From Fimbriosthenelais zetlandica (taxonomy: Eukaryota), in contig OZ365113.1 of NCBI GenBank assembly GCA_977030845.1, positions 13,764,001 to 13,828,000 on the forward strand: DNA of 64,000 nt. Reading direction: 5' to 3'. The position numbers and the translations under genes are program-made. Below the pieces are notes generated by a model, which did not search any database, was not told where the DNA came from, and saw nothing but the letters and a program-made list of their open reading frames with translations. Below, in pieces: positions 34,901-56,561 of this stretch; the stretch's first letter is position 1, and each line of letters starts with the position of its first letter.

Positions 34901-35430
34901 CATATCACCTAATAACCCGACCCTATACTGTAGGTGGGCACATATCATCTAATAGCCCTATACTCTAAGTAGCCCGACCATTCAGGTGGGCATTACTAGA
35001 TGTTAATGCTCCATCCATACAAGTAGAAAATAGTTAATTCCAAACAGTTTAACTAAGTAATGCTAAGTAATAAATTCTGTTCATTACAGAGAGAATAGTT
35101 GAAGCTCCGTCGTCGCCCACCTCTCCGTCGTCAGCCACTATGACGGACTCGTGTACACAGACCACACTAAAACGTCCTCCACGCGCTCCTCGCCATGGCT
35201 CCTCCTCCTCCTCCACCATCTCCCTCACTCCTACCTCCCAACCACACTCACTGAGCACAGATGTGAGTACTGGTAGGCCTGCATATTTTATATCTACTTC
35301 TTTTCTTTTTCATTACCTGAAATACGTTAATTAACAGAGATCTTATTGTATTTTATTGTAGGTTTTTGTAGGAATATTTAACTGCTCTTCTGAAGTTAAA
35401 ATTTGTTTCATACTTGTCTTGCAGGTATAG
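10494..35430 (+). CDS. PLEKHG4: Multi-exon RhoGEF, PLEKHG4/puratrophin-1-like (Sec14-like + spectrin-like repeats + DH + PH), about 1452 aa; whole-gene span
   Basis: 20 exons with canonical AG/GT sites join in one frame (sum 4359 nt, divisible by 3). Recognisable motifs: Sec14-like SGIAVYSG...LPSELGGQLQHNHRQWVVFR; DH EMIDTEQHYVRSL...IFGNLEQIH...YLLKPVQRMGKYALLL; PH QGRLLRQDEF...RRVFLFEELILFSK; family-type post-PH motif MGIGRKPCLDLKPS. Exact orthology within PLEKHG4/PLEKHG4B/ARHGEF40 not resolved. Further upstream coding exons outside the window are not excluded. Confidence 0.9.
15921..15938 (+). CDS. PLEKHG4: Candidate 18-nt in-frame microexon of the RhoGEF
   Basis: tgctaat branch point, ccttgccctttttcctttccatacag acceptor, CGCGTAGGATCGTGCTGA, gtaagt donor; phase 1-1, no stop. 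Confidence 0.6.
   Translation, partial: RVGSC
16799..16927 (+). CDS. PLEKHG4: RhoGEF exon (GGGEGMMAEG...ESGIAVYS), start of Sec14-like domain
   Basis: ttatacag acceptor, G|gtgagt donor, phase 1-1. Confidence 0.85.
17802..17925 (+). CDS. PLEKHG4: RhoGEF exon (YADSHGSRLVGIL...LFLYYRSLP), Sec14-like
   Basis: tgtttccag acceptor, AA|gtaagt donor, phase 1-2. Confidence 0.88.
18051..18150 (+). CDS. PLEKHG4: RhoGEF exon (GENRNKGFTLIVEARG...IYMIH), Sec14-like
   Basis: tactaac branch point and tctttttcag acceptor, CAT|gtaagt donor, phase 2-0. Confidence 0.88.
19229..19333 (+). CDS. PLEKHG4: RhoGEF exon (ETCPDAIAIVHLL...QLNIK)
   Basis: tttttttcag acceptor, AAA|gtcagt donor, phase 0-0. Confidence 0.87.
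19745..19861 (+). CDS. PLEKHG4: RhoGEF exon (IDLVTSLETLYKFVPPPHLPSELGGQLQHNHRQWVVFRR), end of Sec14-like domain
   Basis: ctccacag acceptor, CGG|gtcagt donor; matches the Sec14/CRAL-TRIO C-terminal LPxELGGxLxxxHxxW pattern. Confidence 0.9.
20865..21115 (+). CDS. PLEKHG4: RhoGEF exon (QLDPLLMECQRL...VSLDY), spectrin-like helix
   Basis: atatttcag acceptor, AG|gtatat donor, phase 0-2. Confidence 0.87.
21239..21641. mobile_element. MITE of Tc1/mariner(pogo)-type, about 403 bp, intronic
   Basis: Perfect 25-bp TIR CCGTACTTGCCGGTGTATAACGCGC / GCGCGTTATACACCGGCAAGTACGG; TA duplication on both sides; internal repeats of gcgcgttatacaccgg. Confidence 0.9.
22643..22781 (+). CDS. PLEKHG4: RhoGEF exon (ESMEYAQCL...RRLKLQQCLQLRLFEDEASQ), spectrin-like
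   Basis: ttttattacag acceptor, CAG|gtaggc donor; RRxKLQQCLQLRLFE is a spectrin-repeat junction pattern. Confidence 0.9.
22820..23086. mobile_element. MITE with ~95-bp TIRs (TAGAG...CTCTA), TA target duplication, intronic
   Basis: Left tagaggtttttcatgagacgtccaaggcgtc...ttttggacgtatagcactgcac is mirrored on the right at about 85-90% identity; flanked by TA. Confidence 0.85.
23606..23728 (+). CDS. PLEKHG4: RhoGEF exon (VIGWLDTEGEKCI...EFDKFYFAAT), spectrin-like
   Basis: tctacctcag acceptor, ACA|gtaagt donor, phase 0-0. Confidence 0.9.
29895..30089 (+). CDS. PLEKHG4: RhoGEF exon (TQTEKGKDMVDEACLL...CYFLLDK)
   Basis: ctttgcttgtag acceptor (alternative in-frame cag 6 nt downstream), AAG|gtaatg donor. 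Confidence 0.88.
30283..31205 (+). CDS. PLEKHG4: RhoGEF large exon (SQEWALDATKY...SSESLP)
   Basis: Lies within ORF 30202-31209; gttgcag acceptor, AG|gtaagt donor, phase 0-2. Confidence 0.9.
31412..31639 (+). CDS. PLEKHG4: RhoGEF exon (MPEEEDL...poly-Gly...EEMKRR)
   Basis: tttttctgcag acceptor, AG|gtgagt donor, phase 2-2; poly-Gly encoded by a GGT microsatellite. Confidence 0.87.
32063..32312 (+). CDS. PLEKHG4: RhoGEF exon, DH domain N-terminal part
   Basis: TLELIMREMIDTEQHYVRSL...IFGNLEQIHTFH; ttaatccag acceptor, CAT|gtgagt donor. Confidence 0.95.
32566..32655 (+). CDS. PLEKHG4: RhoGEF exon, DH domain (AQEFYLYALYNKNKPKSDEL...FFK)
   Basis: ttgttacag acceptor, AAG|gtgagt donor. Confidence 0.95.
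32810..32953 (+). CDS. PLEKHG4: RhoGEF exon, DH domain (RKQQKLSDRMDLSSYLLKPVQRMGKYALLL...DLK)
   Basis: ccctatag acceptor, AAG|gtgaga donor; canonical DH LLKPVQR motif. Confidence 0.95.
33179..33605 (+). CDS. PLEKHG4: RhoGEF exon, DH end plus PH domain
   Basis: SALEMVKFQLRHGNDLL...QGRLLRQDEF...FLFEELILFSK...FEIWFRRR; G|gtacta donor, phase 1. Confidence 0.93.
33717..33833 (+). CDS. PLEKHG4: RhoGEF exon (LRLQEMARMGIGRKPCLDLKPSEDNINDRFV...)
   Basis: ttttttcag acceptor, G|gtaggt donor, phase 1-1. Confidence 0.9.
34027..34293 (+). CDS. PLEKHG4: RhoGEF exon, Ser-rich C-terminal region (ARSRNSIAVSTF...RPHSIISVSSTSSS...)
   Basis: tttttcctatag acceptor, G|gtaatt donor, phase 1-1. Confidence 0.88.
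34306..34964. repeat. Intronic minisatellite, 17 units of 35 or 40 bp plus a partial unit, with higher-order structure
   Basis: Unit catctaataacc(tgacc)ctatactgta(g/c)gtgggc(c/a)catat; order 35-40-40 recurs. Confidence 0.97.
35090..35262 (+). CDS. PLEKHG4: RhoGEF penultimate coding exon (RIVEAPSSP...DSCTQT...LSTD)
   Basis: tcattacag acceptor, GAT|gtgagt donor, phase 1-0. Confidence 0.85.
35425..35430 (+). CDS. PLEKHG4: RhoGEF terminal exon coding part: GTA TAG (Val-stop), followed by 3'UTR
   Basis: Acceptor tacttgtcttgcag ends at 35424; gives C-terminus STDV*. Confidence 0.72.
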   Translation, partial: V

Positions 35431-37277: not shown

Positions 37278-37622
37278 TATGAAATGAAAAATCTAATTAT
37301 TGCCTCTTGTCTCTTGCCTCATTTTAACAAAAATTGATTGGCTAGAACAGCTAGCTTGGTTCTTCCATAGAGATCAATGCTAAAGATTAGTTTTAGGCCT
37401 GATAGGAGATGATTAGGCACGGAAATGAGTAGGCCGAAATTCCAAGAAAATGTTAGATCCCAAAACCTAATTGGTGGGAGTGCAACCCCGATAACCCCTC
37501 TTCTGAATGCGCCATTGAGACATGGGCCAGGTCGACAAGAACTCCCATCGTTGGAGGTGAAACATAGCTGGCTAGTTCATGTTTTCGCCGCTGTAAGTCT
37601 CGGAGCAGCGAAAAATTCATTT

Positions 37623-37693
37623 AAAAGAGGTGGAATCGAACCCCCGATCCTTCGCGCTCCAGGCCAGTGGCTTACCTCTAAGCTACCAGGCTC
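37623..37693 (-). ncRNA. tRNA-derived Pol III-like unit (tRNA pseudogene or SINE head), not a canonical tRNA
   Basis: A-box-like GGTAGCTTAGAGGTAAG, D stem GCTT/AAGC, B box GGTTCGATTCC, followed directly by TTTT; acceptor stem truncated. Confidence 0.6.
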
Positions 37694-38708
37694 ATACATT
37701 CGCTGTAGCTCTCAGGTCATACATTAGACCCTGCCCAGTGCAAGGCTGAATCACAACGCTTATAATTATTTTGACCCCCGGCCCCCTTCCCCTTCCCCGA
37801 ACCTCCAACCCCAACCCCATGTCTATCCCTAGCACTGTTATAAACTCACTCTAAAACCCCCAGCCCGATTTGAAACGGCTAACCTGTCATAATCCCTTGG
37901 AATAGCCCACTGTGTAGGTACTGTCCATAGGCGCCAATGTTAAAAATTTCTTTAGCCCCCCAGACCCCTCCCCGGCCCCCAACCTCCACACCAACCTCCA
38001 TGTCTACCCCCAGTACACACCCCAACATCCTCCAAAAAATTCAGCCTGATCCATTGCCTCTAACCTGTCTAAATTCCTTGTTTTCCGTAAAAGTGCACGC
38101 TCCATAGGCACAATGTTAAAAATCACTCACGATTACAGGAATGTGTGCCACAGAGCCGGTTTGCCAGTCCACTCCAATCGGCTCTTTTCATACTTAATAT
38201 GTGTTATTTTCACTGAAAACAACGGCTATGTATGACTTATTACTTCTACTGATAAATATCAAAAGGGCAGAGACGTAAAACGAAGATAATACCGATTTTT
38301 GCGAAGTTGACAAATCGGCTGTGCGTATACAGGCCTATAATTTGGCCTTTTAAAAACCTTAACAGCGCCCTCTCACTAAATGTCGAAAAAGTTGAATAAC
38401 TTCGTAATTAATTGGTCTAAAATTACAATTCAAACGGATTATTCTTAGTTAGGAGACCCTTCAGATATCTATGTGGTTTTTGTTCCGATAAATTTCATTT
38501 AAAATTTTAGATTTTCAAAATGGACTGAATTTCTTCAATTAGCATTGGAGTCAATGGAAGGAGGCGCCTGAGCGCCAGTGGCGACCCGTGAACGGCGGAA
38601 ACGTGAACTACTATGCGCCAGCCAGCATAGACGGAGTATCTGTCACGGTGAGGCTATTCGCTGGGAGGACGAGGCTTGTCATACAGGCTACAGCCAGCAT
38701 AGTCTGAA

Positions 38709-38975
38709 TGAAAGTGAAGGAACACCCAGCAAGGATAAAGGCCTTGTGAAATTTATGGTAAATAGTGAAGGAACGCCTAGCAAGGGTATATAGGCCTTGT
38801 GATATGTAGGCCTATGGGAAATAGTGAAGGAGCGCCTAGCAAGGGTATAGGCCTGATGATAGGCCTATGTATGGGAAATAGTGAAGGAACGCCTAGCATG
38901 GGTATATAAGGCCTTGTGATATTTATGGGAAATAGTGAACGAACGCCAAGCCCAGGTATAGGCCTTGTGACATAC
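38709..38975 (+). repeat. Five tandem ~50-58-bp units in the foldback core (mirror copy at ~50310-50580)
   Basis: Unit aaatagtgaaggaacgcctagcaagggtatataggccttgtgatatttatggg. Confidence 0.9.
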
Positions 38976-40674
38976 AGCGGCGAAACGGTGAACTACAGTA
39001 GGCTATTATGATCTCGGCAAAGCTCTCTACTCCTTTCTCGGTGCGTTGGGTAGATCATAGTAGAGTAGTTCACCTTTCTGCCGCTTTCGGGTCGCTTCAT
39101 TCGCGCTGGCTTGTCCTTCCATAGAGTCCAATGCTAAAGCCTCAAATTGGCACCATTTTCAAAAATCGAAATTTTAAATTAATTTCAGTTGCACAAAAAT
39201 CACATAGATACCTGGAGGTGCTTCCAACTAAGAATAATCCGTTCGAATTGTAATTTTAGACCCATTATTTACAAAGTTATTCAACTTTTTCGACTTTTAG
39301 TGAGAGGGCGCTGTTAAGGTTTTTAAAAGGCCAAATTATAGGTCAGTATACGCACGGCCGATTGGTCAACTTCGCAAAAATCGGTATTATCCTCGTTTTA
39401 CGTCTCTGTTCTTTTGATATTTATCAGTAGAGGTCATAAGTCATACATAACCGTTGTTTGGAGTAAAAATAACACATATTAAGTATGGAAAGAGCCGATT
39501 GGAGTGGACTGGCAAACCGGCTCTGTGGCACACATTCCTGTAATCGTGAGTGATTTTTAACATTGCGCCTATGGAGCGTGCACTTTTGCGGAAAACAAGG
39601 AATTTAGACAAGTTAGAGGCAATGGATCAGGCTGAATTTTTGGGAGGGTGTTGGGGTGTGTATTGGGGGTAGACACGGAGGTTGGGGCGGGGGTTGGGGG
39701 CCGGGGAGGGGTCCGGGGGGCTAGAGAATTTTTAACATTGGCGCCTATGGACAGTACCTACACAGTGGGCTATTCCAAGGGATTATGACAGGTTAGCCGT
39801 TTCAAATCGGGCATAGAACTGTTCTCTCAGAGGAACACTTCTATGATTAGCGTGACAACACTATTCAGCCATCAGGATTAGTAGATTGTCATCTCTACTG
39901 ATGTTTAATTATCAATGGTTGATGAAATAGAGCCGGACTCTTCCATGAGACCCCCTTGTCTCTGTGGACGGGTGGCAGACCGGCATCTGCCGCCGGCTCT
40001 CCCCGACCACAACAGCCCCGACTCCCGGCTAGATTCCTCCATTGCCACGGTCTGAATTTCCCTTTAATTACTATCCCATATTATTAGCGGTTATTCCGTT
40101 TTTGTTCTAAGGTCTGCATGGGGTGTGGCGTGGTAAAGAATACCGTACCGTACGGATTTATTGCATGTGGGCCCTACATAGGCCTATCCAAATTAGTAGC
40201 CCCCATTTTGTGGTGGAAAGACGTACCATGATGTTATTACCATCCACTACTTAGATTCAAGATTGATTTTATTTTTCTTCCTACGCCCCTGTATTTGTTT
40301 GTAAACTAATAATATACGTGTCCACCCTGAAGTCTCTTTATTATATTTTCCACCTATCTTCCAAACCAAACGATTTTATTGGGGTAGGCTTATGGAATTC
40401 CTCATACGTGGAGATAGGTGGAGAATATAATATAAAGAGACTTGATAGCTGCTTAGAGTAAAATTTTACTCTAAGATAGCTGCCACAGTTGTAAATGGAA
40501 ACTGTGACGTCTACCAATGTGAAAAATATATGCCTACATGGCCTACAGCTGTGTGGAATTAAATGTGCCTGTCTGGTGCCTTAGTAAAGCACTGTGCCTG
40601 CTTAAGTCAAATATTCGTCTATGTGCATTTCTCATCACACTTTCGCAGAGAGGAAAATGCATAGGCCTACCCAC

Positions 40675-40746
40675 AGCACCAAAGAGGATTCGAACCCACG
40701 ACCATCCGGTTTCTAATGCGCCACCCTACCAACTGATCTAGATCCA
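40675..40746 (-). mobile_element. tRNA-derived SINE head or tRNA pseudogene (different family)
   Basis: A box TAGATCAGTTGGTAG and B box GGTTCGAATCC at tRNA spacing; no acceptor stem. Confidence 0.55.
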
Positions 40747-41360
40747 GTTTTGGCTACTTAGGCGCTTCACCCTACCTGTGATAAGCTATAGGCCTATACA
40801 TGTAGAAAAATGGGAGTTGGAGATCATAAAAGTCCAGGTCGGACTGACCAAATGATTTTTCCAAGTGATAGCAAAACAAAATGGGAGTCTCAGATTGTAG
40901 GCTAAATGTCGAGTTCTGACTAGATTAAATATGTTAAATTTACATGAAGCCAAGAGAGTAAGACATTGTGAGAGGTGGCTGATAATATGCTGTGTCACCT
41001 AGTCCAGGAATCTTTTAATGGGGCCCGATGTTATATTTCATCATTGTTTTCCTTTAAAATATCTTTGACACGATTTGATTGGTGTTTTATAGATTTGTTG
41101 TTACATATTTTCTCGGTTACCAACTTATAATTGACAGATCAGGGTGGTCAGGTCAGTCTGGGTGTGTTCAGAAACCGTGGACCTTACCAAAAAACTTCTC
41201 TCTAAGTCAACTTGTCCGAAATCAACCATAAAAAGTATGATATGAATAGAAAACACATTTTCCTAATATCGCAATTTTTTATATTCGGTTTCAGACCATT
41301 GTGATTATTTGTATTGGCTTATTGATCCGAACACCTCCTGCACCGCGGCCTTGCTTACAG

Positions 41361-42103
41361 GTGTGTGGACACGCTTGTCCTGGAATCTCAATGGCAAGTT
41401 CCTAAGGAAATATTCATGAAAATGTAAGTTTTTAACCAGATTTGTCAGCTAATTTTGTGTTGAACATTAAGTTTGTATTTTAGGGATTGTATATTGATGT
41501 GTTATAATATTTTACATGTTGGATATCTGGGAGAAAATTGGATCTTGAATTGTGCAAGTTGTCTGAGAGTTACACTAGTACATGTGTACAATATGGCGTC
41601 CCCTCGATCACCTTGCTGGTTTTGTGAAACGCATGATTCGAAATTACTATGTGTAAGCCTACAGATATATAAGGGAAATAACGCAGTTATCAAAATACCA
41701 GAAACGCAGACAATTTAAGAGATACAAAATGGTCCACCAAATTTCCAATTTCTGTAAACTATCCTAAGTTTCCTTCTAATTCTTTTTGCCCTTCCCGTCC
41801 CTCTTCCACACGCCACTGTTTTTCATGCTAATAATTGTACTCTTTCACATCTCTGTCACATCTCTGTACAATATATTTTTCCTTTTGCTAATATTTGGTG
41901 TTTCTTTCAGGACTGAAACTTTTGAGTCATTGGTACTGGATCTGCTAAATGCTAAATGAATATTATTTATCATATTTTAGGGGAAAAATCGTTGTGCCAC
42001 GCCCTGCTGCATCGTCATCGTCTCTACTTCTCCAGCTTCACATGAGAGGACATTTCTTCATGCACAACAATCATCTGAGTTCCTCCTGACTACCTGGCTG
42101 AAG
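41361..42103 (+). other. Three candidate exons (41361-41423, 41911-41932, 41981-42103) joining in one open frame; orphan gene or transposase relic
   Basis: Acceptors cttacag, tttctttcag, tattttag; donors gtaagt, gtactg, gtaaga; phases 2-2, 2-0, 0-0; second intron only 48 nt. Confidence 0.35.
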
Positions 42104-45018
42104 GTAAGACAATTAAACTAATTAATGCACAAGTCAATGTGCCCCCGAACATTGACCTGGGGGTTTAGACCATTTGGGGCAGAACGACGCCGGGATTCAT
42201 ACTGTAGATTTTTCGTCTTGGAAATTTCAATACATTTAACATTATAACCAGTGATGATAATATTATTATGAAATCACAGCATTTCCGACTTATAAATAAT
42301 TGTAAGGATACCCGGGAATTAAGACTTAATTTTTGGAGTTAGTCTGAAATCTCCTGGTCAGCCTGGGGGTTGGCGGAGGGCGGTACATTGACTGGTGCAT
42401 ACTAGGTGTTAAGTATCTTTTGCATGTTTTGGTCAACTAAGCACAATTATTAACATGTTCTCTGTACTTTCGACTTGTCGGGGTCTTGTCTGTTCCTTTC
42501 CTTATCAGCTTAGTCTTTTGTGTAATTAAAACATAGGTAGTTTCTCGTTGAGGGCTTGTCCAATGTTTCTTCTTAGTGCATGGAGTCGATTATCTTACTG
42601 TCTTTTGTCCGTTTGTTGGCGATTCATGTAAGTTGTAGATAGACATGAGTTTGGTACCTCTTAGTTTAAAAGCTTCTCCCATTTCATATAGTTTTGCAAT
42701 CGTTTTTTCAGATATTATAATGGGTAAAGTAAAGAAAGTAAAAAAAGGAAGACCAATATAGATAAACATTAATTTTGTTATTTCCACCGAGGAAACCCGC
42801 AAAAAACAGGAATCAAGACAGAACCGATGACTTAGATTTCAGGCTAATGATCTAAAGAAAGAAGGGATAGTAATACATTTTATTGGCCTTATATATCTTT
42901 AATTTCATTATAATTTTTTCATGGCTTTTAGGTTTATCTCTGTCCGCCTAGTCTATGCTATTTTAGCTCCCTGATATAATTCTACTTTTAAAATCTATTA
43001 TCTCATTGAGTGAGGCTACTTAGTCGCCTATTATCTCCTTATATTGTAGTTGTATTCTGTATTGCCTCTGTACTGAGTGCATTGTATACTCGTCCATTCT
43101 ATCTTTTGGATTTAATTCTATTGACATTTATCTCCTTTCTCTCTCATGAAGTAGAGTGTCTTATTTTGTCCAGCCTTTTGATTATATTTCTGTTCTAATT
43201 TAGATTGATTGTAGACTTAGTTTAGTATATACCCTCCTATTCCATTGTCTTTTGGCTCTTCAAATATTTTCGATTTTTTTTTTAGATATAGTTCAGTGTC
43301 TTTCAGGGCAGTCTATGCTAGTTGAATCACTCTTTAGGCCTATATAGAGCTCAGTCTATGCTAGTTGAAGTACTCTTTATAATTTTATAGAGCTCAATAT
43401 TCCGAATTAGTTTATTATATTTTATTAGTTTATCACATGGCTCCTTCTTTTTTTTTTTTTTTAGCTCCTTGATATTTTTGTCCATGTCAAATCTATTAAG
43501 CTCCATTTTGTCACTGAGTATCGGTTAATTTGTCCCTATTCTCTTATACTCTTATATATTGTACACAAAGCTTTATCTTAGAGTTCCTGTTCTATCCTCG
43601 TCGATTCTATTTTGTGGACCCATCTGGATTTAATTCGATTAGCATTGACCTCCCGTCCCTCCCATTAAGTCTTATAAATGTAGTCCAAGTTTTTTTAGAT
43701 CCATTTTTATTTGTAGATTTAATATAGTACATGATCCTACTTGATATTCTTGTCTCTATTTGAAGTTTTATATTCGCTTTGTTAGGGCAGTTATTTTAGT
43801 TTAGTTTATTTTAGTTTCTAGTGACATTTTTCACCCATAAATTACAGGCTCGTCTTTAGTCCATTTGTTTTTTATTACCCAGTTTTATTTGTAGAATTTA
43901 TTGAGTATATTCCATCCGACTCCATTTTGTTACGGCTATTTGATTAGATTTAGTTCAATGCAGTATACCCTAGCTCTATATCGAGTTAGTTTTTGTGTTA
44001 GGACAGTTCTTTACCATTTATTTTGTCTACAATTCCTTTACATTCTTCTGTAGCATTCAATCGAGTTTTCTTCAGTTCAGTCAATTTCCATTGAACTAAG
44101 GATATTTATTCTGTGCTGCTTCTCTATATTAAGTTTCTCCTTTCTAATCTAAATCGGTGTATGTATTTCTTTTATATATATATTCCTGTGCTTGGGCTAG
44201 CCATTGACCATCCAAATTCGCTCGTTTCCTCCCTCCTACATCCTCCCTCACAGCCTGGTCCATAGACCCCCCCCCCACCCTGCTTACCCCTACCCCCACT
44301 CCTTCCGTATGCCTGCCTCCTAAGAATTCCTTCATCCCCCATCTTCCCCTCGCTCCCAACCTTCTCCTCCCTCCCAACCTTCTCCTCCCTCCCTCCCTAC
44401 CTTCTCCTCCCTCCAAACCTTCTCCGACTGCAACTCACTCCTCCAGTCTCCACTCTAACTCGCCCTCCACTCAAACTCGCCCTCCAGTCAACCCACACCC
44501 CCACTTTTATTATTCTCCCTCTATCAATGGATATTCCTACACCTATAAATTTTATTTTATTTCCTGTCACCCTCCCCACTCTCACAGCATAGTGTTCTCC
44601 CGTTCCTTTATACGTCTGCCTCCTAAGAATTCCTACATCCATCCTCCCTCCCTCAACTCCCACTTTTCCAAAATTTCCTCAATGTCTGTTTCAGGTAGTT
44701 TTAAGATATTCTCTTATAACCCTGTCTACTAAGTTCATTTCTAGTCTATCTTGTTAAGTTTCCTTGTTTTAAGTCCTTCACACTGTCAACTAATGCTCTG
44801 GTCTACATTCAAGTAATTTCCTTTCCTTCTTTTAAGTCCTGTAATATTCTTTTCTAACTAATATAGTTTAAGTACCTTCTTAAGTCTAATATTCATTTAA
44901 GTTTTACTGCTCCTTTCCTTTCTTAAGTCTTTTATCTCCTTTCCTTTCCTTCTTTTAAGTCCGATAATATTCTTTTCTAACTAATTTAGTTTAAGTACCT
45001 TCCTTCATCCAAGTCTAT

Positions 45019-45128
45019 CTCCACTGTCACCATTTCAAAATTATTCTATCTCCACTGTCACTGTCAACTACTGCTCTACTGTCACCATTTCAAAACTATT
45101 CTATCTCCACTGTCACTGTCAACTACTG
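45019..45128. repeat. 55-bp tandem duplication rich in CTGTCA
   Basis: ctc(c/t)actgtcaccatttcaaaa(t/c)tattctatctccactgtcactgtcaactactg twice. Confidence 0.9.
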
Positions 45129-45223
45129 GCAATGTCTCTTATAGACACTGTCATAGTTGACAGTTTATTTTTTTTTTCTTATTTTTTTTTATTTCTATTT
45201 TTTTTCTATCTTCTTCTCTACTA

Positions 45224-45278
45224 TCAACTAGTTGACAGTGCTTCTACTACACCAGTAGAAGCACTGTCAACTAGTTGA
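45224..45278. repeat. Perfect 25-bp inverted repeat with a 5-nt loop
   Basis: tcaactagttgacagtgcttctact-acacc-agtagaagcactgtcaactagttga. Confidence 0.95.
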
Positions 45279-45592
45279 CAGTAACTTCTAATTTTTTTTT
45301 TATTTCCTTCTCTACTGTCAATAGTCACTACTGACAGTTGAGTTTGGAAAATCTTTTAAGTCCAAAGCTACTGTCAATGGCCAGAAGGGCCAGTTGACGT
45401 TGACACTCGAGATAGGTTCTGCCCACACGGCCAGGATTTTTCAAAAAATGACCTCCAGACCTAACCCCCATGACAGGGGTTAAGCCCAGAGGCACATCTT
45501 TTAATTTGTTCAGTCAATCTTCCCATCAATTGGGCAAGAAAGACCAAACAAATTAAAAGAGCTGTAAAAGGAATACAAACATATATACAATT

Positions 45593-48503
45593 TCAGTTCA
45601 ATAATTTTATTTCACCATAAGAATCAAGCTGCAACTTCTTGTTTTTCAGGTCTTCTTGGGACATCAAACTGCTACAATGGTCGGTTTTCAGGTCTTCTTG
45701 GGACATCAAACTGCTACAATGGTCCATTTTCATACATCTCCAGCACTTTACCTCTGCTGCATTGATATCACCTGGAAAAGAAGACATAAAACAGTCTTAG
45801 ATAACATTTTGACACATCTCTGGGAAAAGAACATATTTGATAATAAAATTGAACACACTGAAATGCCTACTTCTATTTTCATATCACTCAGCTTCACCTC
45901 ATGCTATATCCTGTATACTAATTTTGGCTTATTTAGGTATACAAATTTATTTGCAGTGTACACAAATTTACCATGTATTGCAAATCTAAAGCTACATTAT
46001 CTACACAGAAATTAGTTTTCCTAAATAAGCCATAAATGAAATTTCTAACAAACATGTCTAAAACTACAGAGTTGAGATTTTTGGTTTATTTATGAACACA
46101 AATTATACTGAAAATAATGTTCACCTTGTCTATCTTTATACATTAGCAGTATAAAACTGACAAAATCATTTCTATGGGGCATTAATTTTTAACCAAAAAT
46201 ATACTGAACTTTACATACAGAATAATTATACTAAAATGCCTAATCTAACTCAGTTTTAAAGGCTATATATTTTACAAATTGATTTGTGTGAAAGTGGACA
46301 TTTTATCAGGAATTTTTATTTTTGGCGTTTAGGAATAAACTCCAGATACAACTTTCATGCACTATCTGCTGTGGAAATGGCCATACTAAACCATTTAGTT
46401 TATCCTCTATCTAGTTTTGCAAATTATTTAAAGGCCTAGATCTAGCTTATATGGATATTACTGTTACAGAAACGCACCAAACTTTCGGACCTAATTTTAA
46501 TAGCCTATCAAGGAAGTAGGCATTTTAATTTTTTTAAGTTGGCTCTTTTAGAATATATCAATTGTTTTCTAAAATTCCTTCCTAGTTCCTAATGGCTATT
46601 TGAAAGATAAATGCATTTCTAAAATCAATTTAAAATAAATGAAGACTAAACTTGCAGTCTAACTACAATTAAGCCTATACAGCAAATAATTTATAACTTT
46701 CACTAATTGACTTTAGAGCTTTTTACCTAACTTGCTTCAATTAATTTACATTAGTAATATACTACATATCATGGTATACTTTAGAAGCCTCTTAATCTGG
46801 TCAAAATTAAGATATTCAGTTTTGCAAAGCCAGGAAATTTATTGCCATAGAATTTTCATGCCCGTAGTCAGGGGTTGGGACGCGGCAGTTAAACATTCCC
46901 CTTCCTACTTAAACTAAGCCTCGAGTCTAACAACTTCACACTCAACTAAATTATGAAATGCTTGAGACAAGACTTGAGCTGCGGACTGACTGAATTCGTT
47001 TGGGAGATAGATTTAAACTTTATGGCTGCAAGGAAAGTACCCTAGATTGCGGGTTAAAATAACAATTAAAAATATTACCTGGCCAATAGGCTGTACTTTT
47101 TCCCAGTTTGTAAAGTAACCAATGCTCAAGTCTTGCATTCAAGTAAAGAGGTAAGGCCTAGAATACAAATTGGTGGCTTCCTGGTGCATTCATGGGGCAA
47201 ACAAATCTTTGGGGATAATTTAGCAAATTAACGCTCTGAAATGTGTAGCTAACTTATATATTTCTTTAGTGCACAAAGGCTGCTAAGCGCCAAATGAGTT
47301 TCTAAAAGATTTGGGGATACTTTAGTGCATAAGGGTAATTAAATTCCGAAAGAAATTTATGAAAGGGTTGGGAGATAATTTGGCGCACAACGGCTCAAAT
47401 TTAAATCAATTTCCAACTATTTCTGATAAGTTAGCAGACAAATACAGCTCTCCAATGGGGATAATTTCTTTAAAAGAAACCATGTTGGACAGCCCAAAAC
47501 AAGGGGGGAATTCAGCAATAGGAAACTGCGTAATTTACAAGCCATTGAAATATTGCAGTCCTGCCTTCATGAATGCCACGAGAAAATCACCAATTCCTAG
47601 TTGGGCCCAATAGCAAGGAATAAAATAACTTACTTTTTGTCAGTATTTACTGGACGAATGAAGGGTGGTTGAACGACGGCAGTACGAATGGAGAGTGGGG
47701 AAATGCCTGGTGCCCCTGAACGTATGGTCGTGTCAGTATGAAAAGATAAGAAGTGAAAGAACATTAAGTATAGGCATGAATAAAAATTTAACATAATATT
47801 AACTCGGAATAGTCTCGTTGTATTACAGTAATGCGGCCAGTACACAGGCTGAAGAGTTCATTAAATTGTACTGTGATAAATTAAAATGGCTGCCATATTA
47901 CCACCACAAATTCTACACAATATATAATACATTAACTAAATAAACCAAGTAAACTTTTGTAAAATCCAGTTGGCCATTCTCCACAAGTCTAGCATGGATA
48001 TGATTAAAAAGAAAGTTTAAGAAAACAACTAAGGAATTTAGATAAATAAGTCGTACAGGCCGAGAATAAGAATAAAAAACTAAAGTAAATACAATAGGAA
48101 AGTTGATGTCCAGATCCAGGTGGAGAAAGGTGGCAGGGAGTATACAATGAATACAGAATAAATTCATATGAGTGAACACTCACCTGACACAACTGCCTCC
48201 TTTGCTGTCCAGACAGAAAAAGGCTGATTCTTGGTCGTTGCTGCAGACTTCCTCAGATCAGCCTTCTCATTGGCCGAGAGAGGTGTCACATGGTGATGCA
48301 AACCACAGCCTTCTCATTGGCACTGAGAGTCGTCACACTGCCAAGCAACTAGAGGTTTTGTTAGGTGTCTGTCCATTGGTTCTTATTATCAGGTGATTAG
48401 TACTAGTACAGCAGTGGCAAGATAGGTGGCATATGCAGCCCTCAATCTTGGTTCCCTGGTTTCCCGCTGGGTCTGCCCAGGCGCTCTTTGCAACCATTCT
48501 GAC
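45593..48503 (-). pseudogene. Spliced non-coding or pseudogene relic (exon-like 48503-48184, 47715-47634, 45771-45593)
   Basis: Consensus acceptors and donors (gttcag, cag|gtgagt, aa|gtaagt, cttttccag); first exon closed in all frames; last segment encodes a degenerate CxxCxxxxH knuckle and has AATAAA. Confidence 0.35.
45643..45724. repeat. 42-bp tandem duplication
   Basis: ttttcaggtcttcttgggacatcaaactgctacaatggtc twice. Confidence 0.95.
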
Positions 48504-48820
48504 CTGAACATAAGCAGTTTCGAATTTTCCTATAATTTTACATGTTAAATAAAGCTATTACAATGCGCATCTAACCCAAATAAAGGTGTTTAACATTACT
48601 GAAATGACATGTGACAGTAATATCTCATGATTGGCATTTAATTTGTGGATCACTCAGGTGTGGTCTCTGATAGGGCCTACAATCAATAGGGACATGGCTT
48701 ATATATAAGTGGGCATCTCAAAAGTAAGCAAGTTAACAAAACTATTTACTTTCCTTTGGAGTCAGACGACCACCCAACACGGTAACAGTCCTTGAAATTA
48801 GTTGAATGCCCAGTACCGTA

Positions 48821-48870
48821 TATTAAGAACTATGTATTTTTGAACTATTAAGAACTATGTATTTTTGAAC
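48821..48870. repeat. Perfect 25-bp tandem duplication
   Basis: tattaagaactatgtatttttgaac twice. Confidence 0.95.
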
Positions 48871-49529
48871 GAGAACAGATAATTTAGGCCTCATATATTA
48901 AACAAATTTTCAAAAATTAAAGTGGGTCTCAGACCACCGCCTACTGTTTTATAATGATTAAATTCTGAAATAAAAATTTTGAGATGGGAAAAAACGTCAG
49001 TTGTTTAGCGTTTAATGTCCTATCTCCCCTCCCTATATTGGACAAATTTTATAGGCTCCGTAGTTGAATTAATCTATTAAGGTTTTTACCTAGTTTTTAT
49101 AGTTATATATAACTCATATGTTCCCCCTTCAAGCCTGGGCCCTTCACTAGCTCTATGCGTGTCACACCCACGGCCCATTCATTTAGCCCCGCCATCCATA
49201 CTAAATTAAGCCAAAGACATGATTGCGGTGGTTATTTCCTGAGCACACACCCGTACAGCAGGCTGCCTGACACTCGTCACCTGCATGGCCTGTTAATCGT
49301 TATAATTCAGTGTCAGTCTACTCACATTTAGTACTTGTAATCCCTGTTTGGCTCACAAAACAGTCCTTCAATATCGATGAAAACTTGTCAAGTTATGAGC
49401 AGATGAAGTTACCGGATGTTTATAGCTTGGATAACAGCAGAAATTGCCCCATGTTAAAACGCCAACCTCAACCAGTTTTAACGAATAGTTCCTGGTTTAT
49501 CCGCTTGTATAATCTAGCGCAAATATCTG

Positions 49530-51658
49530 CTGCCATAGGGTCCAATGTTAAAAATTATTTAGCCCCCCAGGCCCCTCCCCGGCCCCGAACCTCAACCTCC
49601 ACTCTCATGTCTACCCCCGCCACCGACCCCAACTCCCTCCCAAAAATTCAGCCTGATTCGAAATGGTTAACCTGTTTAAATCCTTTGGATTGTGCAAAAG
49701 TGTCCCCTCCATAGGCTCAATGTTAAAAATCACTCACGATTACAGGAATGTGTGCTACAGAGCCGGTTTGCCAGTCCACTCCAATCGGATTTTTCTCTAC
49801 CTAATACATATTATTTTCACTCAAGACCACGGTTATGTATAACTTATGACCTCTACTGATACATCTCAAAAGAGTGGAGACGAAAAACGAGGAAAAGTCC
49901 GATTTCTGCAAAAGTGACAAATCGGCCGAGCGTATACCGGCCTATAATTTGGCCTTTTAAAAACCTTAACAGCGCCCTCTCACTAAAAGTCGAAAAAGTT
50001 GAATAACTTTGTAAATAATGGGTCTAAAATTACAATTCAAACGGATTATTCTTAGTTGGAAGCACCTCCAGGTATCTATGTGATTTTTGTGCAACTGAAA
50101 TTAATTTAAAATTTCGATTTTTGAAAATGGTGCCAATTTGAGGCTTTAGCATTGGACTCTATGGAAGGACAAGCCAGCGCGAATGAAGCGACCCGAAAGC
50201 GGCAGAAAGGTGAACTACTCTACTATGATCTACCCAACGCACCGAGAAAGGAGTAGAGAGCTTTGCCGAGATCATAATAGCCTACTGTAGTTCACCGTTT
50301 CGCCGCTGTATGTCACAAGGCCTATACCTGGGCTTGGCGTTCGTTCACTATTTCCCATAAATATCACAAGGCCTTATATACCCATGCTAGGCGTTCCTTC
50401 ACTATTTCCCATACATAGGCCTATCATCAGGCCTATACCCTTGCTAGGCGCTCCTTCACTATTTCCCATAGGCCTACATATCACAAGGCCTATATACCCT
50501 TGCTAGGCGTTCCTTCACTATATTTACCATAAATATCACAAGGCCTATATCCTTGCTGGGTGTTCCTTCACTTTCATTCAGACTATGCTGGCTGTAGCCA
50601 AGCCTCGTCCTCCCAGCGAATAGCCTCACCGGGACAGATACTCCGTCTATGCTGGCTGGCGCATAGTAGTTCACGTTTCCGCCGTTCACGGGTCGCCACT
50701 GGCGCTCAGGCGCCTCCTTCCATTGACTCCAATGCTAATTGAAGAAATTCAGTCCATTTTGAAAATCTAAAATTTTAAATGAAATTTATCGGAACAAAAA
50801 CCATATAGATATCTGAAGGGTCTCCTAACTAAGAATAATCCGTTTGAATTGTAATTTTAGACCAATTAATTACGAAGTTATTCAACTTTTTCGACATTTA
50901 GTGAGAGGGCGCTGTTAAGGTTTTTAAAAGGCCAAATTATAGGCCTGTATACGCACAGCCGATTTGTCAACTTCGCAAAAATCGGTATTATCTTCGTTTT
51001 ACGTCTCTGCCCTTTTGATATTTATCAGTAGAGGTAATAAGTCATACATAGCCGTGGTTTTGAGTGAAAATAACACATATTAAGTATGGAAAGAGCCGAT
51101 TGGAGTGGACTGGCAAACCGGCTCTGTGGCACACATTCCTGTAATCGTGAGTGATTTTTAACATTGCGCCTATGGAGCGTGCACTTTTACGGAAAACAAG
51201 GAATTTAGACAGGTTAGAGGCAATGGATCAGGCTGAATTTTTGGGAGGGTGTTGGGGTGTGTACTGGGGGTAGACATGGAGGTTGGGGCGGGGGTTGGGG
51301 GCCGGGGAGGGGTCCGGGGGGCTAGAGAATTTTTAACATTGGCGCCTATGGACAGTACCTACACAGTGGGCTATTCCAAGGGATTATGACCGGTTAGCCG
51401 TTTCAAATCGGGCTGGGGGTTTTAGAGTGAGTTTATAGCAGTGCTAGGGATAGACATGGGGTTGTGGTTGGAGGTTCGGGGAAGGGGAAGGGGGCCGGGG
51501 GTCAAAATAATTATAAACGTTGTGATTCTGCCTTGCACTGGGCAGGGTGTAACGCATGACCTGAGAGCTGCAATGAATGTGTGAGCCAGGTAGCTTAGAG
51601 GTAAGCCACTGGCCTGGAACGCGGAAGATCGGGGGTTCGATTCCACCTCTTTTAAATG
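49530..51658. mobile_element. Foldback-type element copy 2, inverted relative to copy 1
   Basis: 50000-51658 is the near-identical reverse complement of 37618-39300; the 49530-49950 arm is more diverged. Confidence 0.85.
51583..51653 (+). ncRNA. tRNA-derived Pol III-like unit, mirror copy
   Basis: gagccaggtagcttagaggtaagccactggcctggaacgcggaagatcgggggttcgattccacctctttt. Confidence 0.6.
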
Positions 51659-51664
51659 TAGCAT

Positions 51665-51990
51665 AGAATGGGGCTGAATTTTTGGGAGGGAGTTGGTGAG
51701 GGTGCCGGGGTCCGGGGGGCTAAATAAATTTTACCGTTGGAGCCTATGGACAGTACCTACACAGTGGGCATTCTAAGGGATTTTTACATGTTAGCCGTTT
51801 CGAGTAATGCTTGTATTTTTGGAGTGAGTTGATGGGAGTGCTGGGGGTAGGCTAAACATGGGGGTGGTGGTGGAGGTTGGGGCCAGGGGAGGTGTCCGGG
51901 GGGGGGGGGGGGGGGAGCACATAATTCTGATTTAGCCTTGTCCTGGGCCTTTCAGGCTAAATCGTATCTAGGCCTACTACTGCCGTTACC
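51665..51990. repeat. Additional degenerate arm module (two subrepeats) outside copy 2
   Basis: ggctgaatttttgggaggg...ctatggacagtacctacacagtgggc matches 51233-51400. Confidence 0.75.
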
Positions 51991-51993
51991 TGT

Positions 51994-52069
51994 GAGCCAG
52001 GTAGTCCAGAGGTAAGACACTGGCCCGCAACGTCAGCGGCTGGGGTTCAATTTTAGGTTCACCTTTTTT
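51994..52069 (+). ncRNA. Degenerate tRNA-like unit
   Basis: gagccaggtagtccagaggtaagac; intact anticodon-like stem CTGGC/GTCAG with loop CCGCAAC; degenerate B box ggttcaatt; T6 run. Confidence 0.45.
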
Positions 52070-52120
52070 CTGCTCCATGGGTCGCTAGGCCTACACATTT
52101 CTATAACATTGTATCATATC

Positions 52121-52200
52121 AAAAGGGATTTACAAGACGGGGAATCGAACCCCGGTCTCTCGCGTTGTAGTCAACATGTCTTAGGCCTACCTCTAAATAT
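52121..52200 (-). ncRNA. tRNA-like unit whose 3' half resembles eukaryotic tRNA-Asp/Gly (AACGCGAGAGACCGGGGTTCGATTCCCCG)
   Basis: Perfect T-arm CGGGG-TTCGATT-CCCCG; D region interrupted by an aggcct insertion; TTTT downstream. Confidence 0.55.
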
Positions 52201-55200
52201 CCGAATATCCCTTCAGTGCCCATCAAGGTTTGCAAACCTCCCGTCCCTGGCCCCCTGAAGCTTTGTGATCATTGAAGCGTTGACAAATTTACACACGAAT
52301 CAATGTGCACATATTCGCTATAGGCGCCTTGTATGAAGAATTTCACAGTGCATGTTTTCCATTGTATTATTCTAGCATATCTTATAGTTGATCGCTATCG
52401 AAATGAATTCATCAGATTAAAAAACAAATTGTTTTTTTTTTTACTAGATCGCAATTTTATTCGCATAATATATAATAGATAGGTGAAAACGGAACACAGG
52501 CACCGATAGAACAGGAACCTACTATACTATCTACAGCTGCAGAGAAAAAAGTACCTCCAATACCCTCAAAATAATTAGAGCCGCGACCAAGACAGTAGGC
52601 CTAATGGAAGTAGTGTGTGTTGACTATACGATCTAGACTCACACCGACACACACATCACCCTTCATACATTGATTTCCATAACCGACTGTAAAATAGTTT
52701 TTTAATACTTGTATGTTTTACTGAAAAATATTTTTTTTTTTATATAAATCAGTCATAACCTAAAAAAGAGACTAGATCTAGACTTTTCTCAAATAATTAT
52801 GTTCAAGTCATTGGGACACAATGAAAAATAAGTGTTGTATATCTCAGCCATGGAGACGAATTATAATTTCCCTGGGGAAAGTATAAATGTTAAAAGACCA
52901 AAATATATCAAACCCAGGTTGACATAAAAATAAAGGATTGTATAAAATTGCTAGATCGATTCGGAAAAGGGAGATAACAAATATATAGGAATACAACACG
53001 TAAAATATAATTAATCATTCACAAAATATCTGGACATATACAGAACCAAATCTCAGAAATTAGCTGAGAGGATAAATTAAAAACTGGAGTGAATGAAATT
53101 TAAAATACAGGTGTTAAAATTCATATTAGATCATTGTGGTGAAGTCACTGTGTACCAGTGTATTTTTTCAGCCTACAGGCGAGCGAAACTATTTGTTTTG
53201 GCACAAGCTATTTTCTATCAATGTAGAACTTTGGTAAAGATGTGAGCATTACTTGATTAAAACATTATACGCGTACATATTTTACAAACGTAGTTTTGGT
53301 CGTTTTACAAGATCATAAACTCATGATTTTAAGAGTGGATAAAACATACATAATTAGCGCAATATGCATTTCATATTTTCCATACATTGAACAATTTATA
53401 TTATAATGTATACATTAAGTTATTATTTATCCTGTACCACGCATAAAGCCATTATGTGATTTTCAAAGAAACCCTTCAAACCTACCGTTATTAATATTAC
53501 ATTTCACTTCACGTGAAGATTTAGCATTCTTATAAATTACATTGTGTTGATTCGCTAATGGATGCCTATGAATTATCTCCACTGAAATTCCATATTATAC
53601 ATGATTATGCAATGATAATTCTTCGATATGTTTCTCCCACCTCTTAAACATTGTAATGACTGAATGTTGACAATCTGACAATTTACGAGGTACTAGGTGG
53701 GAACTAATAATTTCCACTGGAAATTCCGGTCTAGGTCAGAGACCCTAACACCCTATTGAAATAGCGATTCGTAGTTCCACTACATTTCCATTTAATCACT
53801 TTTTCGAAAGCAAACATTTTCCAAAGCAAAACATTTAATAAAACAGTTTAGCACAATTCGGACACGATCTGATGATTGAATACAAAACAAAAACATTGCA
53901 GAACATAGGTAAAAGATCGATTATACAACAATAATTATAGTGAGACATTGAAATTGAGGACCAAATTTTCAGTGATCTTCATGATACATTACATGAATTA
54001 AATTAAAACCTGCTGTTAAATAATTTAGATAGCAATCAAACCATCTGAGGCTGAACAAAATGCAATTTTTATCACAGTTCTATCCTTTCCAATAAAGAGT
54101 CAAGATTGGGACCGAGTGTAACAATTTGTAACGATTGGAATGAAACATCTAGATTAAATATTCAGGCTTATTATAACTTACACCTGTTACTTATTAAAAC
54201 TTTGAAGAGACTAGGTACAGTTACTACATAAAATCATTACCCAATAGGGCCAGAAAAATTTCTGTATAATGTTTTGAAATCTACAATGTATTATCATACC
54301 TGATAATAATTCAGATAAATCATAAATTTCTCGATAATAGAATTATGACACTTAACTAACAGTAAGGAAAATTCCCAACTATCGTCTATGAGAGAAACAT
54401 TTGTAAGTTTTAGGATCATCTTAAACATACTTGTATTAAATAATTAGGCGTCCCAATTATATTTGGGATGGGATATTGAAAATCTAGCGAAAATACAGCT
54501 AGCCATAAGAAGTCATCTTATGCAAAATAAAAACAACATGATGGGAAAATAATTCTTGACCAGAAAATAAAATAATCATAATGAAGTATCAACCAAAAAT
54601 CTAGCAAACCCTTCTTTCACAGAAGTGATACACGGTATTCTTCAATTTACCTTTGTTACCAAATACCTTTGGTTCATCCCAGTAGTTATAATTAATATAT
54701 TCTGTAAGTTTTGAATTCCTATCTATAAATGAGTGGAAAGCATGTCATATTTAACAATCCATTAGGCCGATTGCACCATCTGGCGAGAGTTGTGTGAACC
54801 CTCGTCAGTACCCTCGCCTGCTTAGTGCTATATTATAAAACTTTGAACGTAATATTTTCCATCTTATTTTTCACCTTTTCTGTCAACAGAGAAATATATG
54901 AATAAATCTACATTCAAACAATAAATAATTATAAGTTGTGTTGTAAAACCAGATTATTTCAAGCTGTGAGTAAATTAACCTCCAAGATTTTTCAGAGTCA
55001 CGACAGCAACAACAGTGTTGGACAAAAGTGTTAGAAACGTACCTCTGTAGGGACATATTATGTTCACATTGAAAAAATTATTTAACATCAAGTGCATGTG
55101 AATCATAATCAATTATAGCTACCTATGTGGGACGTCTATTTAAGAATTGCATATATATATTTTAGTATAATCTTTAATATTCTAGAATTTTTAAACAATT

Positions 55201-56448: not shown

Positions 56449-56561
56449 CTATCTCATCTTTTTATTGTTGTTGAAAGTACCAGTAGTCTCCGAAGAGTCT
56501 GGATCATCAGGGATGACTGTATTAAACGGGTAGTCCCATAGTTTGCTGGATATTCCAAAAC
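56449..56561 (-). CDS. FA2H: FA2H last coding exon (FGISSKLWDYPFNT...KKMR*)
   Basis: ccgtatag acceptor; TAG stop at 56451-56449. Confidence 0.92.

Follow-up and report, generated by a model that had tools for sequence, protein, structure and literature searches.

In Drosophila, the Foldback-like elements Galileo, a member of the P superfamily, and Tetris carry long inverted arms composed of tandem subrepeats; in the terminal inverted repeats (TIRs) of Tetris, the subrepeats are about 220 bp long (PMC3573991, PMC4079207). These families are mostly non-autonomous, rearranged, chimeric, two-TIR and solo-TIR forms are frequent, sequence is exchanged between copies, and Galileo copies mediate inversions through ectopic recombination (PMC3573991, PMC4079207).

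The window, that is, the whole 64-kb stretch of DNA that was analysed, contains a group of long palindromic repeats between a RhoGEF gene and a fatty-acid 2-hydroxylase (FA2H) gene. We suggest that this is probably a local cluster of a non-autonomous, non-coding foldback-type repeat family, and not one element.

The inverted pair and its surroundings

The flanking genes had been predicted to converge, and they do, RhoGEF being read from the plus strand and FA2H from the minus strand; coding exons of FA2H were traced as far as about 56488, which leaves approximately 4.3 kb to the repeat cluster. The features of the locus are as follows.

32058-35298, plus strand: 3′ exons (DH and PH domains) of a PLEKHG4/puratrophin-like RhoGEF, the upstream convergent gene
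37350-37599, no strand: left-flank boxes at 37350-37385 (36 bp, 86%) and 37573-37599 (27 bp, 85%)
37618-37862, minus strand: copy 1 tip module, consisting of a decayed tRNA-derived unit, a linker and the outermost C-rich subrepeat
37863-38612, plus strand: copy 1 outer arm (O type)
38222-39343, no strand: homogenised tract, equivalent to 49940-51055 in copy 2, with 7 substitutions in 1122 bp (0.6%)
38613-39063, plus strand: copy 1 core, containing 4.7 tandem units of 57 bp (38713-38970) and, at about 39030, a small central palindrome
39064-39812, minus strand: copy 1 inner arm, mosaic, without a tip module
39813-49532, no strand: spacer of 9.7 kb, non-coding, single-copy in the window and of ordinary local composition
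49533-50219, plus strand: copy 2 inner arm (I type), sharing about 82% identity with the outer arms, without a tip module
50220-50664, minus strand: copy 2 core, in which the 57-bp array occupies 50313-50572
50665-51413, minus strand: copy 2 outer arm (O type)
51414-51658, plus strand: copy 2 tip module, with a tRNA-derived unit at about 51578-51655
51681-52071, plus strand: third tip module, about 70% identical, with a subrepeat, a linker and a tRNA-like unit ending in T6
52121-52207, minus strand: fourth tRNA-like relic, lying tail to tail with the third module and having a perfect B box (52141-52151)
56488-58357, minus strand: exons of a fatty-acid 2-hydroxylase (FA2H/SCS7-like), the downstream convergent gene

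The original prediction that the two copies are reverse complements of each other was borne out by BLAST, which aligned copy 1 (37618-39812) with copy 2 (49533-51658) in inverted orientation at 94.5% identity over 2137 columns, the aligned extent being 37618-39750 against 51658-49533 and the differences amounting to 96 substitutions plus indels. Their inner ends differ, copy 1 stopping at 39812 and copy 2 at the equivalent of 39750, and the inner tip is missing in both. Each copy had also been read as a hairpin with arms of about 750 bp, subrepeats of about 175 bp and a five-unit core, and this description stands with slightly altered dimensions. Long terminal inverted repeats make up most of each copy, the arms measuring 690-752 bp and being 82-90% identical: in copy 1, 37863-38612 pairs with 39064-39812 (752 bp, 89.8% identity), and in copy 2, 49533-50219 pairs with 50665-51351 (about 690 bp, 82.5% identity). 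Compared with the others, the copy 2 inner arm is short and strongly diverged, and decayed homology possibly extends it as far as about 49475. The arms carry approximately 2.5 G/C-skewed subrepeats each, with a period of 168-178 bp, and the subrepeat marker motif CCATAGGNNNCAATGTTAAAAAT has six matches in the window, compared with 0.01 expected. The core of each copy holds a tandem array of 4.7 units of 57 bp (38713-38970 and 50313-50572). The assignment of the copies to foldback-type, non-coding repeats with long modular arms is supported, and it is confirmed that they are real, non-coding, hairpin-shaped repeats in opposite orientation with sequence swapped between them; nothing shows that the copies and the intervening 10 kb move or flip as one unit.

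No further copies of the family were found in the rest of the 64-kb window; it occupies only 37.35-52.2 kb, where four arms and five tip or tRNA-like modules are packed into 15 kb, and the remaining 49 kb has neither. The limits originally given to the block, 37618 and 51658, are those of the inverted pair, but the cluster itself runs on to the right of 51658, and short boxes lie to the left of 37618. On the right, the third tip module, also delimited as 51681-52052, and the inverted fourth relic, also delimited as 52121-52196, directly adjoin copy 2; the third module is in tandem with the copy 2 tip and holds a 20-nt G run. On the left, the boxes are similar to the family's arm-proximal and core-edge boxes, the marker motif recurs with 3 mismatches at 37365, and these boxes are possibly an old family fragment.

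In a first relative (contig L001 of ENA ERZ24900295, FA2H exon 57% identical at the amino acid level), no RhoGEF was found within 6 kb downstream of FA2H. In a closer relative (ENA ERZ26222911, loci L002-L004), whose RhoGEF exon has 83% amino acid identity, the 23.7 kb past the RhoGEF stop contained no FA2H, long foldback or similarity to the block. The gene calls on the contig of the first relative read through standard stops.

Tips, ends and spacer

A tRNA-like unit had been proposed at each outer tip, and the box motifs and T-run bear this out, but tRNA detection by ARAGORN and Rfam and the folding comparison were all negative. In copy 1, the tRNA-derived unit (about 37621-37700) lies on the minus strand and faces outward, with its B box at 37632-37642, its A box at 37675-37685 and a T-run at the extreme end; in copy 2, on the plus strand, the A box is at 51591-51601, the B box at 51634-51644 and the T-run at 51650-51653. 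Both tips have a perfect B box and an A box matching at 10 of 11 positions, followed by the T-run, and the two tips are 6.1% diverged from each other. ARAGORN at default settings called no tRNA genes, the Rfam tRNA model gave no match to the tRNA-like units at E<=1, where Rfam as a whole yielded only sub-threshold chance matches, and the units fold no better than shuffled sequences (z-scores of -1.0 to +0.8). Relaxed ARAGORN calls were rejected as tRNA genes, their number (20 in 64 kb) being that of noise. Judged by whether detectors recognise a cloverleaf, the tips are not functional tRNA genes. The homology between the copies ends just past the T-run of the tRNA-like unit, and the same endpoint is found in the independent third module, which suggests a natural element end and not a random duplication breakpoint.

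Target duplications were found neither around the 14 kb (37618/51658) nor at alternative ends nor around either copy; no pair of ends shares a flank of at least 6 bp in the right register, this being a weak test when both copies are one-tipped. A search for transposase found no Pfam domain in any block ORF of at least 70 aa, and these Pfam and boundary checks agree with the first reading of the sequence, which had seen neither a transposase nor a target duplication at 37618/51658. As there is no target-site duplication and no copy with two intact tips, the locus does not demonstrate transposition. An ORF that reads through the foldback gave no match in a protein word search, exact-pattern scans of JGI metagenome contigs gave none to the conserved arm motifs, and no foldback family whose ends are tRNA-like emerged from word searches of the open literature.

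The spacer has a GC content of 0.37, like the neighbouring DNA, and a CpG observed/expected ratio of 0.49, compared with 0.46 in the neighbouring DNA and 0.75 in the repeats. Pfam searches with 14 spacer and edge ORFs of at least 70 aa identified no domain. The spacer contains an unrelated tRNA-derived SINE-like relic at about 40680-40750 on the minus strand, small hairpins, and a pyrimidine-rich stretch with minisatellites at 44.0-45.2 kb. The idea that it represents cargo is therefore not supported, there being no Pfam-recognisable ORF of at least 70 aa and a composition equal to that of local DNA.

Mosaic divergence and the history of the cluster

Divergence between the copies forms a sharp mosaic, the values by segment being 6.1%, 3.3%, 0.5%, 0.7%, 0.7% and 15.2%. 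Inside the homogenised tract, an identical run of 493 bp (38751-39243) has a length that was reached in 0 of 5000 permutations, and the two-breakpoint chi-square statistic was likewise never reached in permutations. In an alignment of the four arms, the proximal part of the copy 1 inner arm (39064-39343) is identical to the copy 2 inner arm, and its distal part (39480-39812) is 98.7% identical to the copy 2 outer arm. CpG decay was rejected as the source of the uneven divergence, CpG transitions being few and the CpG-rich centre nearly identical. We infer that the mosaic was caused by gene conversion among the four arms, and one tract of about 1.1 kb (38222-39343) explains most of it; the zone 39344-39480 is patchy and private changes are clustered at 37947-37990, suggesting more than one exchange and making the single-tract history a simplification. 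As the mosaic identity implies that the arms recombine, inversion is mechanistically possible, and crossover between arms may thus have the potential to produce it.

In the reading that we think probable, a local cluster of foldback-type repeats, a family member would begin on its outside with a decayed tRNA-derived unit that faces outward and closes with a T-run; further inward would come approximately 2.5 G-quadruplex-prone subrepeats of about 175 bp, an AT-rich arm interior and, in the core, a 57-bp minisatellite. The two large members, each minus its inner tip, would lie in opposite orientation 9.7 kb apart with smaller fragments beside them, and the spacer would be ordinary intergenic DNA trapped between them. 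The copies may have arisen by separate local insertions or by an old local duplication, with mobility presumably supplied in trans by an unknown transposase; their presence within 10 kb of each other requires local hopping, insertion preference or local duplication. Later gene conversion between them would, in the simplest history, have carried the tract from copy 2 to copy 1, a transfer that would leave the copy 1 inner arm outer-type distally and inner-type proximally.

The common one-tipped architecture, the 4.7-unit core array, the identical inner-type proximal arm and the centre diverged by only 0.6% would also fit a single insertion followed by local inverted duplication of the element, whether by alternative or aberrant transposition with sister-chromatid ends or by replication template switching at the hairpin, with later conversion replacing the distal inner arm of copy 1. 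We consider this history rather unlikely, since the conversion tract accounts equally well for the shared central features, while duplication needs extra events for the 3-6% divergence in the outer 600 bp beside the 0.6% centre and must also account for a copy 1 inner arm reaching 62 bp past that of copy 2. An improbable alternative is a non-mobile palindromic array, which would have evolved locally from a cluster of decayed tRNA genes whose flanks were conserved, with amplification by unequal and inverted duplication; it would explain the five tRNA-derived units in 15 kb, the tandem and tail-to-tail tip modules and the failure to find either target duplication or transposase, but the tRNA-like part is only about 75 bp of a 2.1-kb unit, and arm subrepeats with a minisatellite core are typical of foldback elements. 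An assembly artefact, in which chimeric foldback reads or mis-joined haplotypes produced the inverted duplication, seems very unlikely, even though palindromic repeats are difficult to assemble and polishing with cross-mapped reads could account for the 493-bp run of identity: the 96 substitutions plus indels, the segments that are 6% and 15% diverged, the differing inner ends and the 9.7 kb of unique DNA between the copies all argue for two real copies.

The original prediction went further, envisaging an undescribed foldback family that forms a composite, cargo-carrying or invertible unit. The foldback type is supported, and tRNA-like ends had no match in the literature searches; a composite unit is not supported. 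Inverted flanking copies with outward natural tips do provide the right geometry for a composite transposon that mobilised the enclosed 9.7 kb as cargo; given the absence of target duplications at 37618/51658 or at alternative ends, a right end that adjoins more family fragments, and a spacer without coding content whose composition is that of local DNA, we regard such a transposon as very improbable. Hardly likely, too, is the conjunction in which the tRNA-tipped foldbacks are a new mobile element with Pol III-type mini-gene ends and the pair is a functional flip-flop or composite unit. Were it true, recombination among the arms would invert the 9.7-kb segment between the convergent genes, or that segment would be mobilised by the outward tips; the locus would have alternative intergenic states and be a source of long double-stranded RNA. 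With a composite, cargo-carrying transposon unsupported, what is left at this locus is a repeat cluster of a fairly ordinary kind.

Relation to known repeat systems

The locus offers a clean, statistically supported example of what is, by inference, gene conversion among four nested-palindrome arms. If the family were confirmed genome-wide, foldbacks with tRNA-derived Pol III-type arm tips would be an architecture without a match in these literature searches, and such tips raise the question of a role in mobilisation, targeting or chromatin boundaries.

In a SINE, the 5′ end is a tRNA-related head with A and B boxes from which reading proceeds into the body, and there is a tail at the 3′ end. 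The repeats described here resemble tRNA-derived SINEs in having about 75 nt of tRNA-derived sequence with A-box and B-box motifs in a non-coding repeat. They are not built as SINEs, however, since their unit points away from the body at the outer end, with the T-run and the end of the element coming immediately after it, and the remainder is a 2-kb hairpin.

The likeness to Galileo and Tetris lies in the modular subrepeat arms, the rearranged forms and the sequence exchange among copies. Unlike in Galileo and the P superfamily, no 7-bp target duplication, P-like transposase or sequence similarity is shown here. The tips consist of decayed tRNA-derived units that carry Pol III box motifs and end in a T-run, a feature not reported for either family, and the host is a lophotrochozoan-like animal and not a fly. 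In Galileo-like elements, exchange among arms creates new subfamilies and predisposes to inversions.

Finally, as repeats of about 2.1 kb in inverted orientation, 95-99% identical, 10 kb apart and sharing a sharply bounded homogenised tract, the copies resemble the inverted low-copy repeats that mediate inversion and conversion as substrates of NAHR. They differ from these in being palindromes themselves, so that the four arms are able to pair in direct or inverted register.

An inverted pair within a cluster of related pieces

Inverted-repeat and BLAST self-comparisons confirmed an inverted pair of self-folding repeats with subrepeat arms and a tandem core: 37618-39750 is the reverse complement of 49533-51658, with 94.5% identity over 2137 columns. 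Within copy 1 (37618-39812), 37863-38612 pairs with 39064-39812 (752 bp, 89.8%), and within copy 2 (49533-51658) 49533-50219 pairs with 50665-51351 (~690 bp, 82.5%). Both foldbacks enclose 4.7 tandem units of 57 bp (38713-38970 and 50313-50572). Subrepeats recur every 168-178 bp in the arms, about 2.5 per arm, and every one contains the motif CCATAGGNNNCAATGTTAAAAAT (6 matches, 0.01 expected) along with a run rich in C or G. Each ~175-bp subrepeat also has a canonical G-quadruplex motif, together accounting for seven of the window's 21.

G-quadruplex motifs of the subrepeats, all on the strand reading toward the tip
37775-37798
37956-37980
39684-39711
49563-49586
51285-51312
51478-51501
51898-51915

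BLAST self-comparison found no further similar sequence in the remainder of the 64-kb window. Immediately beside the pair lie smaller pieces. A third tip module (subrepeat, linker and tRNA-like unit; 51681-52052) stands in tandem with the copy 2 tip, to which it is ~70% identical, and ends in T6; tail to tail with it, at 52121-52196, lies another tRNA-like relic, the fourth, whose B box is perfect, and two short family-like boxes lie to the left of 37618. In the alignment of the copies, both lack an inner tip: the inner arm of copy 1 ends at 39812, and that of copy 2 at the equivalent of 39750, followed by weak, fading similarity. Given these flanking pieces and missing tips, the true feature is a cluster of family pieces spanning ~37350-52200.

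The third module contains an unbroken 20-nt G run (51897-51916). The 8-mer GCATAGAA occurs both at the copy 1 inner-arm break (39811-39818) and at 51661-51668, 3 bp outside the copy 2 tip, where the third module begins. With ~0.06 such shared matches expected by chance, the 8-mer may reflect microhomology where a rearrangement was joined, or may be coincidental.

On its outer side each copy ends in an outward-reading, tRNA-derived unit of ~75 nt. The B box is perfect (GGTTCGATTCC), the A box scores 10/11 and is spaced as usual, and the T-run falls where homology between the copies ends. The units were rejected as tRNA genes, as ARAGORN at default settings made no calls, the Rfam tRNA model gave no match at E<=1, and folding was no better than that of shuffled sequence. 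Relaxed ARAGORN calls were given no weight because 20 sites were called across the window. We also rejected a SINE identity for the foldback unit, since its tRNA-derived part occupies the outer end, faces outward and ends where the element does.

Mosaic divergence among the four arms

When copy 2 was reverse-complemented and aligned with copy 1, divergence proved strongly uneven by segment.

Divergence between the copies
Tip module: 6.1%
Outer arm, distal: 3.3%
Outer arm, proximal: 0.5%
Core: 0.7%
Inner arm, proximal: 0.7%
Inner arm, distal: 15.2%

Only 7 substitutions separate the copies over the 1122 bp of the centre (38222-39343), where 493 bp in a row are identical, a length reached in none of 5000 permutations of the differences; the two-breakpoint chi-square value was reached in none of 200. 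Mutation-rate differences fail to explain this, since most of the differences are not CpG transitions and the copies are almost identical in the CpG-rich centre. A four-arm alignment showed the copy 1 inner arm to be chimeric: the proximal 280 bp match the copy 2 inner arm, and the distal 330 bp share 98.7% identity with the outer arm of copy 2 but just 63-90% with its inner arm.

The mosaic pattern itself is plain in these alignments, and from it we infer gene conversion as the cause. In the simplest history, two related copies would have stood a few percent apart, copy 1 with two outer-type arms and copy 2 with one old, diverged inner-type arm, and a single non-reciprocal transfer of ~1.1 kb would then have passed from copy 2 to copy 1. 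A patchy zone (39344-39480) and clustered private changes (37947-37990) in the four-arm alignment hint at additional small exchanges. What this locus newly contributes is clear evidence that the four arms have exchanged sequence by recombination.

The spacer and the flanking genes

The original prediction also made the 14-kb block (37618-51658) a composite or cargo-carrying unit, which our results do not support: no direct repeat was found flanking the whole 14 kb or either copy, the right end lies embedded in further family fragments, and the spacer (39813-49532) is non-coding and locally typical. None of its ORFs of at least 70 aa is recognisable by Pfam, and no similarity to the foldbacks or the rest of the window was found. 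Its GC content (0.37) and CpG o/e (0.49) match those of the upstream DNA (0.395 and 0.46), whereas the foldbacks, at a CpG o/e of 0.75, look younger than their surroundings or differently treated. As expected of ordinary intergenic DNA, the spacer has its own unrelated tRNA-derived SINE-like relic (~40680-40750, minus strand). Its B box (GGTTCGAATCC) is perfect and it has a D-arm-like TAGATCAGTTGGTAGGG, but default ARAGORN did not call it.

Other spacer features are a near-perfect hairpin with a ~30-bp stem adjoining 31/55-bp tandem repeats (45217-45284; 45014-45128), where a plant miRNA family gave a sub-threshold, chance Rfam match (E 0.69); a strongly pyrimidine-rich plus strand at 44000-45200 (GC skew to -0.62), with CT-rich minisatellites of 17-40 bp period; and an old duplication in tandem (42889-43323 and 43385-43816; ~430 bp, ~60% identity).

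The flanking genes converge on the cluster as predicted. Upstream, on the plus strand, is a PLEKHG4/puratrophin-like RhoGEF with DH and PH domains, for which the annelid Capitella teleta supplies the best named relative and molluscs come next; downstream, on the minus strand, is an FA2H/SCS7-like hydroxylase (exons 58357 to 56488). Synteny was compared using ENA contigs of two related genomes. In the closer relative (ERZ26222911), 23.7 kb 3' of the RhoGEF stop held no FA2H, long foldback or similarity to the block, and in the more distant one (ERZ24900295) RhoGEF was not found in the 6 kb downstream of FA2H. Several gene calls on the latter contig (ctg6639l; eukaryotic) cross standard stop codons; the pipeline apparently used a non-standard code, making its gene-call products unusable by reference. 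The RhoGEF locus of the closer relative has, in introns and downstream DNA, three long tandem arrays of ~70-90 bp period (locus positions 4984-5802, 13672-14487 and 19787-20347), unrelated to the foldback family.

Comparison with known foldback elements

Membership in a named superfamily gained no support at this locus, with no target duplication at the block and no transposase among ORFs of at least 70 aa compared with Pfam, as originally noted. Word searches of the open literature returned no foldback family with tRNA-like ends. Of the original proposal, an undescribed foldback family remains probable and the composite unit is unsupported. According to two papers, the arms of Galileo and Tetris are long and contain internal tandem repeats, their copies are mostly non-autonomous and rearranged and exchange sequence with one another, and elements of this type have a role in inversions (PMC3573991, PMC4079207). 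Measured against those accounts, the architecture and behaviour seen here resemble foldback-type DNA transposons, and these repeats probably form a foldback variant that has not been described before.
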